Shown: positions 9,571 through 57,713 of the stretch, one piece after another | How positions within the stretch are numbered: the stretch's first letter is position 1 | Layout of the letters: each line of letters starts with the position of its first letter | Sequence record: NC_023568.1 | Length of the DNA: 64,000 nt | Strand: one strand, 5' to 3' | Made by a program: the position numbers and the translations under genes | The notes under the pieces: generated by a model | Told to the model about the DNA's origin: nothing | Database searches by the model: none | What the model saw: only the letters and a program-made list of their open reading frames with translations

Positions 9571-10074
9571 ATGAAAAAACTTACTGCACTATCACTATTG
9601 CTTTTATCTAGCGTTGCAAGCGCAAATGCATCTACTAACGAACAGACTACGTTCATTGACGATGTTCAGGTTCGATTAGGTGGATGGTCTTATCACCTTT
9701 CAGGTGACGGATATTGTCCTGATTTAGCAGATAAATGTAAAACGTCTGTTTTTAAAGAGTACAATGAAACAAACAATGCAATTGGTGTTAGATATAAAAA
9801 TTGGGAAGTTATGACTTTAGAAAACAGCTTCTATGAGCGTAGTTTTGTTGCAGGTTATCACTTCACATACACACCAAGTAAAGAAATTGACTATGATTTA
9901 TTTCTTGGTCTAGCGACTGGTTATACTGAAGTTTATGATCTCGGTATTCTACCTGCGATTCAGCCATCAGTTACTTATTGGGCTACTGATAACTTAGGTG
10001 CAGAGCTTGGGTTGTTGATGGGTTCTGATATCTGGGTGCCAGTCGTAACTATGTCATTTAAAGCTCGTTTTTAA
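9571..10074 (+). CDS. outer-membrane beta-barrel protein (PagP-like fold)
   Basis: signal peptide, amphipathic strands, YNETNNAIG and ENSFYERS motifs, C-terminal Phe; TTGCAA-17-TATAAT promoter. Confidence 0.6.
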   Translation: MKKLTALSLLLLSSVASANASTNEQTTFIDDVQVRLGGWSYHLSGDGYCPDLADKCKTSVFKEYNETNNAIGVRYKNWEVMTLENSFYERSFVAGYHFTYTPSKEIDYDLFLGLATGYTEVYDLGILPAIQPSVTYWATDNLGAELGLLMGSDIWVPVVTMSFKARF

Positions 10075-10131
10075 TGGCACTTACACTCGAACATTCGAGA
10101 AACTTTAACAGCATAAAATGGGAGCCATACA

Positions 10132-11625
10132 ATGCTTAATCTTAATCAAAATATCGCAATCGCAACAGACAGCTACAAAGTTTCACACTGGTCTCAATTC
10201 CCTCGTGGTTTAGAGTACAGTCAATATTACGTTGAAAGCCGGGGCGGCAAGTTCGACAAAATTATGATCGATGGTATGGCATACATGTGTCGTATTCTCG
10301 AAAAAGGTGTTGCAATGAACGATGTCAAGCGTGCGAAACGTCTGTTCAAAAAGCACTTCGGTTCTGAAGTCTTCAATGACAAGGGTTGGGAAATCATCGT
10401 TAACGAACTGAACGGCAAACTGCCTATTAAGATTCGTGCGGTAAAAGAAGGTACTGTAGTACCAGTTAAGCACCCTATCTTGACGATTGAGAACACAGAT
10501 CCACGTTTCGGTTGGCTACCTGGTTATCTTGAAACGTTTATCTTACGTGCGATTTGGTACCCGACAACTGTAGCAACGATCTCGTTCGAAGTGAAGAAAA
10601 TCATTCGTGAATTCATGAAGAAAACGGTTGATGATGAACGCATTGCAGAACAAGAGCCGTTTAAACTTCACGACTTCGGTTCTCGTGGTGTGTCAAGTGG
10701 CGAATCAGCAGCTATTGGCGGCGCAGCTCACTTGAAAAACTTCTTGGGAACTGACAATGTAGAAGCACTTGTTGCAGTTGAAGAGCTTTACGCTGAAGAT
10801 GTTGAAGACTTCATTGCGGGATTCTCTATCCCTGCACGTGAACATTCAACAACTACAATCTACAAAGAATTTGGCGAAGATCAAGCATTCTTGAACTCTA
10901 TCGAGCAATGGGGCGCAGCTCTATACGCTTGTGTAATGGACAGCTACGACTACGAAGCAGCAATGAATCGTGTCTCAACTGGTCGTTTCAAAGAGCTAAT
11001 CATCAGTAAAGGCGGTACGTTTGTTGCTCGTCCTGACTCTGGTGTACCAGTAGATGTAGTAATGAAAGGTCTTGAGATTCTTGGTAAGAACGTTGGTTAC
11101 ACAATCAACAGCAAGGGTTACAAAGTTCTACACCCTAGTTACCGTATCATTCAAGGCGACGGCGTGAACATCGAAGAAATTCGTCGAATTCTATCTTACA
11201 TGGAAAGTAAAGGTTGGTCGGCAGAAAACATTGCATTCGGTATGGGTGGTGGTTTGCTTCAGCAACTTGACCGTGATACTCAACGTTTTGCAATGAAAAT
11301 GTCAGCGGCGATCATCAACGGCGAATACGTTAGTGTGTTCAAAATGCCGAAGACTGACCCAACAAAAGCATCAAAAGCAGGTTTCTTAGATTTGATTGCA
11401 GTCGATGCAGAAAATCCGAACCCAGCAGCTCGTGGTTACGTGACGTTCTCTACTGAAGATTACGACAATCGCGTACACCCTCAGAGCGTGATGCAGACAA
11501 TCTTCGAAAACGGTGTAACAGTTGCTGACTTCTCACTTGAAGAAGCTCGTAAACTGTCTGACGTGCAAGCTGATTTTATCAACGAAGGTGAATGGAAAAT
11601 CGCCAAGAAGATTCGAACAGCGTAA
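10132..11625 (+). CDS. nadV: nicotinamide phosphoribosyltransferase (NAD salvage)
   Basis: TDSYKVSH, LHDFGSRG, RPDSG, IIQGDG, FGMGGGLLQ motifs. Confidence 0.95.
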   Translation: MLNLNQNIAIATDSYKVSHWSQFPRGLEYSQYYVESRGGKFDKIMIDGMAYMCRILEKGVAMNDVKRAKRLFKKHFGSEVFNDKGWEIIVNELNGKLPIKIRAVKEGTVVPVKHPILTIENTDPRFGWLPGYLETFILRAIWYPTTVATISFEVKKIIREFMKKTVDDERIAEQEPFKLHDFGSRGVSSGESAAIGGAAHLKNFLGTDNVEALVAVEELYAEDVEDFIAGFSIPAREHSTTTIYKEFGEDQAFLNSIEQWGAALYACVMDSYDYEAAMNRVSTGRFKELIISKGGTFVARPDSGVPVDVVMKGLEILGKNVGYTINSKGYKVLHPSYRIIQGDGVNIEEIRRILSYMESKGWSAENIAFGMGGGLLQQLDRDTQRFAMKMSAAIINGEYVSVFKMPKTDPTKASKAGFLDLIAVDAENPNPAARGYVTFSTEDYDNRVHPQSVMQTIFENGVTVADFSLEEARKLSDVQADFINEGEWKIAKKIRTA

Positions 11626-54221: not shown

Positions 54222-54337
54222 TGGTAGTCGGGGCTGGATTCGAACCAGCGACCACGTGCTTAACAGGCAATTGAAGGAGTGCTGGAGCGATACTTGTCAG
54301 TATCATTCTTCGTGCTCTACCACTGAGCTACCCGACT
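54222..54337 (-). ncRNA. tRNA body (Asn-like loop retained) with the module inserted in the anticodon arm
   Basis: AGTCGGG/CCCGACT, D and T arms, ACCA; insert GATACT-GACA-AGTATC-GCTC-CAGCA. Confidence 0.8.
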
Positions 54338-55893: not shown

Positions 55894-56017
55894 TGGTGGA
55901 GAGTACGGGATTTGAACCACGTGACAAAAAGATTTACCTAGTTATTAAGGTTGCAGCATGAATGCTTGTCAGTATTCTTTAACATTCTTTTGCTCTACCA
56001 GACTGAGCTAACTCTCC
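55894..56017 (-). ncRNA. tRNA body with the module replacing the anticodon loop
   Basis: GGAGAGT/ACTCTCC, ACCA; GAATACT-GACA-AGCATTC-ATG-CTGCAA. Confidence 0.8.
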
Positions 56018-56024
56018 AGAATTT

Positions 56025-56140
56025 GAAGGTGAAGTGCAGGACTCGAACCTGCGACCTCCGGCGTGCATGTGAATGCAGAATGAAATCTTATCAGACTTCG
56101 TTTTTTGGCCGGCGTTCTAACCTACTGAACTAACTTCACC
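56025..56140 (-). ncRNA. Asp-like tRNA body with the module replacing the anticodon loop
   Basis: GGTGAAGT/ACTTCACC, CCGGC/GCCGG stem; GAAGTCT-GATA-AGATTTC-ATT-CTGCA; no CCA. Confidence 0.78.
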
Positions 56141-56330: not shown

Positions 56331-56519
56331 CTAGTTATATTTGCCTTAGCTAATCAAAACACAATCTGGAATCGTGCGCTTTAATTACGGGATGAATGAC
56401 CCGTTCGCATGTGATTAGCGCAAAAGTATGAATGCGCACCTTTTCTTCTTCAATGTCCAAGGCAAAAAGGACGATGAATACTAGTGCGAGAAGATATACA
56501 ATCAAATTGTCCACCTCGC
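56331..56519 (-). ncRNA. multi-helix structured RNA
   Basis: TTTGCCTT/AAGGCAAA, CTAATCA/TGATTAG, ACGGG/CCCGT, GCGAG/CTCGC pairings. Confidence 0.5.
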
Positions 56520-56528
56520 TTTGTTAGT

Positions 56529-56675
56529 GAGAGTACATTGGTCGAGTGTAACGGAATCGAACCGTTCCCACGATCTCCCTATGATATGCGTAAATTGGTT
56601 GCTGAATATAATCATGTCTGATTACAGTATGCTACGTGTGCTGCCACTACACCAACACTCGACCAATGTACTCTC
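56529..56675 (-). ncRNA. tRNA body with the module, inside a 21-bp terminal stem
   Basis: CGAGTGT/ACACTCG + ACCA; TGTAATCA-GACA-TGATTAT-ATT-CAGCAA; paralogue of 56151-56287. Confidence 0.8.
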
Positions 56676-56676
56676 G

Positions 56677-56758
56677 ATATTTTAAATGTGCGCTACTTGC
56701 ACGCCAGAACGTATACTGGCTCCATGTATTCATTGCGGCTAACGCACATTTAAAATAT
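56677..56758 (-). ncRNA. long-stem RNA
   Basis: 16-bp ATATTTTAAATGTGCG inverted repeat enclosing a GCCAG/CTGGC hairpin. Confidence 0.5.
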
Positions 56759-56760
56759 TA

Positions 56761-56864
56761 CTCATCTTCAGAGAAGAGGCAGAAACGATGAGTTTAGTCT
56801 GCTTAATCAATATTGTTCATCTTCAATAAGAGGCGAGAACGATGAACTTAGCTCGCTTAATCAA
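56761..56864 (-). repeat. two tandem H-type pseudoknot units (55-nt period)
   Basis: five compensatory base-pair changes between copies. Confidence 0.8.
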
Positions 56865-56872
56865 CTGTGTTA

Positions 56873-56993
56873 ATCTTAACATCATTTCAGTGTAAGTCAA
56901 CAACTTTTTTCAAATATTTCATCGAGTTGAAAGTTTGTGTTCTGTCTCTCGACTCGATGAAATACATTCTACATGCTTTTCAGAATAAGTCAA
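56873..56993 (-). promoter_or_regulatory. two early-type promoters heading the tRNA/ncRNA operon
   Basis: AAAGTTGTTGACT...TG.TAAGAT and AAAGTTGTTGACT...TG.TAGAAT; 13-bp leader hairpin between them. Confidence 0.75.
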
Positions 56994-57010
56994 CAACTTT
57001 TTGAAAGTTT

Positions 57011-57265
57011 TTATACTGAAAGAATGATACCGCTTTCTGTCTCACCTCGTTCAAGCGCAGCGTGCTTGATTTGAAGCTGAGATACAGCTTGTTGAAGCTC
57101 AGTGATAGCTTTATCGTAAAGTTTGTTGTTCTCTTTAAGTAAAGCAATCTGATCGGTCTGCATACCGATGATATACGTCAATAATACAACGTTCTCTTCA
57201 GTAGTTAGAGTTTCGGGAGCTTCATTGTACTTCTTTAATACTGCTTCAGTAGATAAATCAGTCAT
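57011..57265 (-). CDS. coiled-coil hypothetical protein
   Basis: ORF track; start probably MTDLS. Confidence 0.65.
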   Translation of the reverse strand: MTDLSTEAVLKKYNEAPETLTTEENVVLLTYIIGMQTDQIALLKENNKLYDKAITELQQAVSQLQIKHAALERGETESGIILSV

Positions 57266-57713
57266 TACTATCAACCCAATTTAAATCAAGTGGTTCAAGA
57301 TATTCATCAACAAGCCGAACTTCAGCGTTGACGGGCATAGGTGTGATCGCGTCGTCATAAGACAACGTAACGTGAGGGGTATAGTCAGGGTAGTCGTGAG
57401 TACCACCGATAGAGATAAGATCATCGTGACGTTCTACAAGTTCTGGACATACCATCTTAGCAACAACTGCATATTTGCCGTCTTGCGTTTTCCAACAGTC
57501 GATATGTTCAACAGTAGCAACGAAAGTGGTATCGACAACAGGTACATCAATTTGCTTACGACTATAAAGCACAGTCACGTGAAATTTATCTGGTTCTAAC
57601 GGATTTTTTAGACGAAGCGTTTTCTGCAATCGAACTAACTCTTGCTTACTCGCCTCGTCTAATCTGATACCAACGTAAGTTCCCTGACTTTCAAGGAACT
57701 TAGATAGTTTCAT
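57258..57713 (-). CDS. acb1: anti-CBASS 2H phosphodiesterase (T4 gp57B)
   Basis: two HxT motifs (FHVTVLYSR, THDYPDYTPHVTLSY), EYLEPLDLNW; synteny 57B-57A-1-3. Confidence 0.9.
   Translation of the reverse strand: MKLSKFLESQGTYVGIRLDEASKQELVRLQKTLRLKNPLEPDKFHVTVLYSRKQIDVPVVDTTFVATVEHIDCWKTQDGKYAVVAKMVCPELVERHDDLISIGGTHDYPDYTPHVTLSYDDAITPMPVNAEVRLVDEYLEPLDLNWVDSND

Follow-up and report, generated by a model that had tools for sequence, protein, structure and literature searches.

We found that positions 56864-56756 on the minus strand of a phage genome (NC_023568.1) hold two head-to-tail 54-nt units, each of them an H-type pseudoknot. The unit is very probably a self-contained, tailed, RNA-level H-type pseudoknot module of ~54 nt that defines a new family. 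We conclude that this is a real RNA family without an Rfam match and that it is apparently undescribed; we found no published description of the element in the literature searched. The array is predicted to come first in a phage transcription unit of stable RNAs, behind tandem sigma-70-type early promoters. As for its role, we tentatively propose, at well below even confidence, that it acts in cis as a leader of this untranslated stable-RNA operon, and we favor this over its release as a protein-binding decoy.

Genome context of the locus

The window, that is, the whole 64,000-nucleotide stretch of the record that we analyzed, comes from a Vibrio phage that is related to T4 and resembles KVP40 (Schizotequatrovirus). 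A segment of 701 bases around the pseudoknot locus is 99.9% identical to phages R10Z and R11Z, and the locus is matched at 78 to 100% identity by ~50 Vibrio phage records, a number that includes duplicate RefSeq/GenBank entries. The gene order on the minus strand is a dNMP kinase, an 88-aa open reading frame (ORF), a homolog of T4 57B, an 87-aa ORF, a noncoding stretch, and a tRNA cluster of at least 27 tRNA genes, all on the minus strand. The 57B homolog belongs to the Acb1 anti-CBASS phosphodiesterase family (Table 1) and lies directly upstream of the RNA operon; many relatives label this gene hypothetical or "RNA ligase." Loci gathered through Acb1/57B relatives were close relatives only. 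The current annotation of the pseudoknot region is blank or consists of spurious short ORFs.

Architecture of the tandem pseudoknots

From 5' to 3', each unit consists of an 8-nt 5' tail, a 5-bp stem 1, a 4-nt loop 1, a 7-bp stem 2, a 3-nt junction, a loop 3 of 11 to 12 nt, and a 4-nt 3' tail, and the strands are interleaved in H-type order (Table 1). An earlier, sequence-only reading had proposed tandem H-type pseudoknots at 56761-56864. We found the letters it quoted for both units on the minus strand. Its lower bound left out 56760, the final base of stem 2. Tandem Repeats Finder reported a period of 54 with 2.0 copies and 83% matches at 56754-56864, and a second repeat search also gave a 54-nt spacing.

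Table 1. Features of the pseudoknot locus and its neighbors, in window coordinates
Feature	Position	Strand	Remark
Pseudoknot unit 1	56811..56864	-	Covariance model R1: 59.6 bits
Unit 1 tails	5' 56864-56857; 3' 56814-56811	-	
Unit 1 stem 1	56856-56852 with 56837-56833	-	
Unit 1 stem 2	56847-56841 with 56821-56815	-	
Unit 1 loops	loop 1 56851-56848; junction 56840-56838; loop 3 56832-56822	-	
Pseudoknot unit 2	56756..56810	-	Covariance model R1: 86 bits
Unit 2 tails	5' 56810-56803; 3' 56759-56756	-	
Unit 2 stem 1	56802-56798 with 56783-56779	-	
Unit 2 stem 2	56793-56787 with 56766-56760	-	
Unit 2 loops	loop 1 56797-56794; junction 56786-56784; loop 3 56778-56767	-	
P1 promoter-like site, TTGACT / 16-nt spacer / TAGAAT	56966..56993	-	Hexamers kept in all aligned relatives
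P2 promoter-like site, TTGACT / 16-nt spacer / TAAGAT, TG before -10	56873..56900	-	Directly upstream of unit 1
Long hairpin between P1 and P2, 5' end of P1 transcripts	56915..56964	-	Continuous helix (chance miRNA-model alignment)
Structured RNA gene after unit 2	56677..56759	-	Closing stem (~20 bp) begins 2 nt downstream of unit 2
tRNA-like gene with internal insert, in extended terminal stem of ~21 bp	56529..56675	-	Next RNA in transcription unit
T4 57B homolog, Acb1 anti-CBASS phosphodiesterase family	57258..57713	-	Pfam PF23474, E = 8e-46

Units 1 and 2 differ in 13 aligned columns, 10 of which are stem positions and 3 of which lie in the middle of loop 3. All 10 differing stem positions are compensatory and make up three pairs of stem 1 and two pairs of stem 2, so that the five compensatory changes of the earlier reading, with no pair broken, were confirmed. 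When we searched both strands of the 64-kb window for the exact geometry and allowed Watson-Crick pairs only, the two units were the sole matches (shuffled mean, 0.15). With G-U pairs allowed, the same geometry gave 8 matches against 4.8 expected. Because this second count is unremarkable, the weight of the evidence rests on covariation. Covariance model R1 found no further copy within the window.

On the RNA strand, no ORF of at least 30 aa crosses the units. The three annotated KVP40-type loci that we examined also lend no support to a coding role on the opposite strand: the ORFs annotated over the units in KVP40, F86, and K566 agree neither in length nor in position, and only two opposite-strand ORFs, both shorter, occur there in the window.

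Covariation of the stems

We aligned 17 distinct units from 13 KVP40-like relatives, and 18 once a unit from a marine lineage (described below) was added. Across the 18 units, 213 of 213 stem cells form standard pairs, 7 of the 12 pairs have changed on both sides, and another 11 pair types were seen besides the commonest. None of 500 column shuffles reached the observed covariation score or paired fraction. In a control in which the 3' partner was slid by 1 to 3 columns, pairing was 25 to 56%. Several changes are independent of the split between units 1 and 2: those in stem 1 of unit 1 in F86, K566, and nt-1, those in the outer pair of unit 2 stem 1, those in two stem-2 pairs of the K566 group, and those in both stems of the marine unit. 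The orthologs thus strengthen the claim of tandem H-type pseudoknots.

The aligner had placed a gap at the outermost stem-1 column in three unit-2 rows. When these rows were slid into register, F86 and D480 showed A opposite C at this column, and thus stem 1 may be 4 bp in these two phages. RNAalifold, which draws no pseudoknots, recovered stem 2 alone. The z-scores from nested minimum free energy (MFE) folding were unremarkable (-0.1 to -0.9) and are uninformative here because nested folding cannot represent a pseudoknot.

The loops had also been called conserved in the earlier reading. This holds across the alignment, where 5 of 19 loop columns vary versus 14 of 24 stem columns (Fisher p = 0.06), and between the two units themselves the only loop differences are the three in mid-loop 3. 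Among the 18 units, there is no variation in the 3-nt junction or in the stem-2 pairs next to it.

These data bear on a reading at the DNA level, in which the locus would be a tandem repeat serving as a recombination motif or as protein-binding sites, or in which the likeness of the units would be due to chance. Repeated promoter/stem-loop motifs (PeSL) that have been implicated in recombination are found in T4-like genomes, nt-1 and KVP40 among them (PMC4122927), and the promoter block described below is itself duplicated. However, the PeSL stem-loop consensus differs from the sequence here and does not explain the pseudoknots (PMC4122927), two interleaved stems covary with 0 broken pairs among 213 cells, and the flanking RNA genes and both promoters all lie on one strand. 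We consider a DNA-level or chance origin very improbable.

At gathering thresholds, only tRNAs in the window pass among Rfam models, and at E up to 10 the leader had no relevant match. With E up to 1, the intact KVP40 and 1.081.O loci and the marine locus again gave only tRNAs above threshold; echoes of tmRNA and YrlA were subthreshold.

Promoters and transcription unit

Two promoter-like sites precede the units (Table 1). They lie within a 35-nt promoter block that is repeated at 93-nt spacing with 83% identity. The two copies fall in the regions 56915-56993 and 56873-56919 of the minus strand. P2 is of the sigma-70 type, and its hexamers and spacing are kept across the KVP40-like clade. The earlier reading had placed a promoter near 56873-56890 and had made the pseudoknots the first RNA from it, at the head of the RNA operon. 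Both points agree with what we found: the promoter-like site is at 56900-56873, and from the position of its -10 hexamer the RNA is predicted to start at ~56866, 2 to 3 nt before unit 1.

The leader thus has the order P1, long hairpin, P2, unit 1, unit 2, structured RNA, and tRNA-like gene. The hairpin between the promoters is kept with compensatory changes in F86, K566, and 1.081.O, and it is not terminator-like, since no U-run follows it. A string of 7 nt occurs both in its stem and in stem 2 of unit 1 and may be left over from a shared origin.

A consensus scan of the RNA strand from 56757 to 54445 found no terminator-like site. The first strong terminator-like site on the minus strand is at 53689-53669, so that the transcription unit headed by the pseudoknots measures ~3.2 kb and does not span the full cluster of 8 kb.

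Neighboring structured RNAs

The RNA that follows unit 2 is ~150 nt long in intact copies (KVP40, L001:940-1095), where 42 pairs are predicted and 22 of them show compensatory changes; it has no Rfam match. The copies in the window and in VH7D have a single internal deletion of ~70 nt, and in the length comparison this RNA measures ~104 nt in VH7D versus 172 to 176 nt in the others. Because the deletion occurred there while the pseudoknots were kept, the interior of this RNA appears dispensable.

The tRNA-like gene that comes next is annotated as tRNA-OTHER or pseudo-tRNA in relatives. It is one of four long tRNA-like genes of 112 to 147 nt on the minus strand (56529-56675, 56028-56139, 55897-56017, and 54225-54337), which have in common a ~45-nt insert with conserved short motifs between the D arm and the anticodon arm. 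The labels of these genes are inconsistent among relatives (pseudo-tRNA, tRNA-OTHER, Cys, Phe, or Asn). In KVP40, the end of one long tRNA-like gene together with the start of the next gives the echo of YrlA, a Y-RNA-like family, at 29.8 bits versus a gathering score of 69.

A small ORF within the RNA operon (56350-56514, minus strand) encodes a hydrophobic peptide of 54 aa here and 74 aa in KVP40. It has no Pfam or PADLOC match, and one stretch of it is loosely like a pseudoknot unit at the DNA level.

Distribution of the unit

The unit is present in all ~50 KVP40-like records, and most KVP40-like phages have it in tandem. Of the cultured relatives, phage 1.081.O is the most distant; it carries just one unit, with a stem 1 like that of unit 2 and a stem 2 like that of unit 1. 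This mixed resemblance fits one ancestral unit that was later duplicated, with compensatory divergence of the copies. Pattern scans of the whole KVP40 and VH7D genomes matched only the pseudoknot locus.

Outside the KVP40 clade, the only true members that we found are on three contigs (L018, L026, and L027) that are 95 to 97% identical and represent one uncultured marine lineage; one of them is binned as a Chloroflexota metagenome-assembled genome (MAG). The lineage includes the 75-kb contig PBMB01000011.1. The marine unit scores 67.8 bits and is a single copy with new compensated stems and almost unchanged loops. It lies ~170 nt after duplicated promoter-like modules and ends 9 nt before a tRNA-Asn gene. 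We detected no protein common to the marine lineage and the window in the regions compared, and most ORFs of the marine lineage have no family assignment. When nucleotide sequences were compared with the window, matches were confined to the unit and to pieces of tRNA.

The setting of the unit is similar in the two lineages. In each lineage, it lies downstream of duplicated promoters and upstream of every tRNA in the transcription unit, a constant place at the head that amounts to only two independent evolutionary observations. The next structured RNA begins within 2 to 9 nt of the unit in both.

Some further observations concern the marine lineage. In L027, ~350 nt of noncoding sequence without an Rfam match follow tRNA-Asn (9850-10230, minus strand), and a run of short palindromic motifs comes after this stretch, before the next ORF. 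A second non-tRNA RNA module of ~110 nt, with a covarying closing stem and a T-arm-like hairpin, occurs in the marine lineage (L027, about 9864-9975, minus strand) and in PVA8 (L142:395-506), phi-ST2, ValKK3, XZ1, and VH1_2019. In these KVP40-like phages, it fills the slot that the long tRNA at 56028-56139 occupies in the window. Acinetobacter T4-like phages have no unit, and only a short tRNA-Asn 5' leader is common to them and the marine lineage. This leader (L143:700-720) resembles the last bases of the marine stem 2 and the linker (L027, 10303-10320), and it may be that the marine unit became attached to a tRNA-Asn leader that already existed.

Five degenerate-pattern scans of public collections gave, besides KVP40, VH7D, and the marine lineage, only coincidences in coding sequences. 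Three candidates (L124, L128, and L134), in which 12 of 12 pairs formed, had seemed to represent a third lineage; they were rejected because the match lies inside a 654-aa ORF. We also scanned the GTDB species representatives, one genome for each of 185,579 species, with a loop-anchored pattern that picks up near-identical loops only. In this set we found no bacterial array and nothing in Vibrio; of four matches, one was a phage-like contig (the Chloroflexota MAG) with a marine-type unit, and three score as chance. A blastn search of plasmids gave no match to the unit.

Possible roles of the pseudoknots

Our preferred reading, a cis-acting leader, follows from the position of the unit in two lineages, its abutment to the next RNA, the sufficiency of one copy, and a layout like that of rRNA operons. 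According to this model, the pseudoknot would fold as it emerges from RNA polymerase, and its near-invariant loops and 3-nt junction would be recognized by a transcription or maturation factor. Such a factor could help polymerase cross a long untranslated template by conferring resistance to Rho or to pausing. Alternatively, it could aid the correct folding and cutting of the abutting downstream RNA, which would be the RNA with the ~20-bp stem 2 nt farther on in the KVP40 type and the tRNA 9 nt farther on in the marine type. The divergence of the stems between copies would then reflect compensatory drift after duplication, with the fold under selection. Consistently with a leader, the unit is kept in all KVP40-like records while the adjoining RNA tolerates its ~70-nt deletion, and a single copy is enough in two lineages (1.081.O and marine). 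Other findings weigh against it. The element has no similarity to any described antiterminator (BoxA consensus, Rfam), the consensus scan found no run of intrinsic terminators that would need to be overridden before 53689-53669, the marine unit lies ~170 nt from its promoter, and duplication in tandem is seen more typically in trans-acting RNAs whose effect depends on dosage.

An alternative that we rate as possible but rather unlikely builds on this last point. Here, host RNases would release the pseudoknots as small stable RNAs that neutralize a protein in trans. RNase III or E would make the cuts, at the long closing stem or the AU-rich linkers, with RNase P acting in the marine type; the target might be a host defense of the endoribonuclease type (type III toxins and nucleases directed at tRNA are examples), and two copies would double the dose. 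That the loops are more constrained than the stems would suit a decoy, as would the resemblance of the operon to an array of discrete structured-RNA cassettes, with a second non-tRNA module in common with the marine lineage. An anti-CBASS gene lies directly upstream, but this neighborhood may be mere synteny inherited from T4. Counter-defense functions are known in phage tRNA regions (bioRxiv 10.1101/2023.03.15.532788). The head-to-tail array of tailed H-type pseudoknots is the architecture of type III antitoxins (PMC5086642), and phage antitoxin mimics are known in variable copy number (PMC3475682), with one or two copies found here. In contrast, the unit is longer than ToxI, no terminator or toxin ORF lies downstream, and no Rfam model matches; moreover, neither the stringent loop-anchored GTDB scan nor the plasmid search found a bacterial or plasmid look-alike.

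A broader form of the decoy idea would place the pseudoknot in an uncharted set of RNA cassettes of phage tRNA clusters. Its other supposed members are the ~150-nt closed RNA, the ~110-nt RNA that bears a T arm, and the long tRNA-like genes with an insert. The pseudoknot would then be a processed trans-acting decoy against host RNA-targeting defense, that is, counter-defense with a new fold that is exchanged between unrelated marine phages. We consider this extended proposal unlikely.

The sequence-only reading had also offered an exonuclease block; of its three functional suggestions, none gained support from our tests, and each keeps some probability. In the KVP40 clade, promoter prediction does put the unit at the 5' end, within a few nucleotides of the predicted transcript start, but the marine homolog, ~170 nt from promoter-like sites, is not at a 5' end. 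More generally, the element could be passive and either protect the 5' end from 5'-end-dependent decay or insulate the leader from mispairing with the stable RNAs. That the unit abuts the next RNA and that P1 transcripts likewise start with a long conserved hairpin would be in keeping with such a role. It leaves unexplained, however, why loops and junction are nearly unchanged between lineages without a detectable common protein in the regions compared, and a simple exonuclease block does not require invariant loops. Vibrio and other gamma-proteobacteria are not known to have a 5'-to-3' exoribonuclease. A passive element of either kind is improbable in our view.

Aptamers are commonly built as small H-type pseudoknots with a conserved junction, and some are known to occur in tandem. 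The units might accordingly be a tandem riboswitch that senses a ligand and tunes transcription of the stable-RNA operon, a proposal to which the unvarying junction and adjacent stem-2 pairs would lend themselves. Yet the Rfam search at E up to 10 gave no riboswitch family, neither a terminator-like platform nor an ORF start that could be sequestered lies directly downstream, and the known distribution covers only two lineages. We hold this to be quite improbable. The remaining probability goes to something other than the readings set out here.

Whichever role applies, clean covariation, a fixed position in well-studied phages, and a second lineage make the unit a tractable entry to the non-tRNA RNAs of tRNA clusters. 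If the leader reading is true, the unit would represent a new RNA fold that assists polymerase, or the maturation of transcripts, in a stable-RNA operon of a phage. If the decoy reading is true, lytic phages would constitutively carry an antitoxin-like decoy RNA, which would be new. Even as a mere structural spacer, the unit would be a new Rfam-type family that is useful for genome annotation.

Comparison with known systems

Type III antitoxins are H-type pseudoknots with two single-stranded tails, arranged in exact head-to-tail arrays (PMC5086642). The monomer is 34 to 36 nt in the ToxI family and somewhat longer in CptI, and downstream of the array come a Rho-independent terminator and a toxin gene of the ToxN, CptN, or TenpN family (PMC5086642). 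Antitoxin mimics exist in phages with varying copy number, and the only one characterized is very similar to its cognate antitoxin (PMC3475682). The element described here is likewise a set of direct repeats in tandem (period 54, 2.0 copies in the window; single in 1.081.O and the marine lineage), its unit is a pseudoknot with tails of 8 and 4 nt, its copy number differs among relatives, and there is phage-borne precedent (PMC5086642, PMC3475682). It differs in its unit of 54 nt and in its place at the head of an operon of tRNAs and structured RNAs in a lytic T4-like phage. It differs also in having no terminator or toxin gene after the units, which a mimic need not have; the ORFs of the RNA operon have no Pfam or PADLOC match, and none is of a toxin family. 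Comparison with antitoxin models gave no Rfam match at E up to 10, although Rfam 15 may not cover all such families. For the antitoxin mimic of the earlier reading, the tailed fold and array fit, whereas unit length and downstream genes do not; a look-alike turned up neither among plasmids nor in the GTDB scan, which picks up near-identical loops only.

tmRNA also has consecutive H-type pseudoknots, and the tandem units echo the pseudoknot-rich part of its Rfam model. We rejected this assignment: the echo scores 12.5 bits versus a gathering score of 47, ARAGORN reported no tmRNA, and there is neither a tag frame nor tRNA-like ends. Pseudoknot riboswitch aptamers resemble the unit in size, H-type topology, conserved junction, and occasional tandem arrangement, but the unit has no Rfam model match, no expression platform, and no regulated coding gene downstream. 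T4 RNAC and RNAD are small stable non-tRNA RNAs of the T4 tRNA region with unknown roles (PMC3014915); by description only, they are like the element here in being non-tRNA small RNAs from the tRNA cluster of a T4-type phage.

Among antiterminators, the gamma-proteobacterial BoxA consensus GYTCTTTAANA (PMC5725501) was unmatched at up to two mismatches on the minus strand of 56650-57000, and the RNA-only processive antiterminators (put, EAR), in which the nascent RNA makes polymerase resistant to termination, gave no Rfam match. Of the antiterminator suggested in the earlier reading, the position fits, while the published BoxA consensus and an Rfam antiterminator match are absent. The leaders of rRNA operons (boxB-boxA-boxC, with Nus factors) carry signals for antitermination and RNA chaperoning (PMC8632103). 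BoxA is a linear motif, whereas the element here is a pseudoknot; the likeness lies in the layout, in which the element follows tandem promoters and opens a long operon of untranslated stable RNAs with long processing-type stems (PMC8632103).
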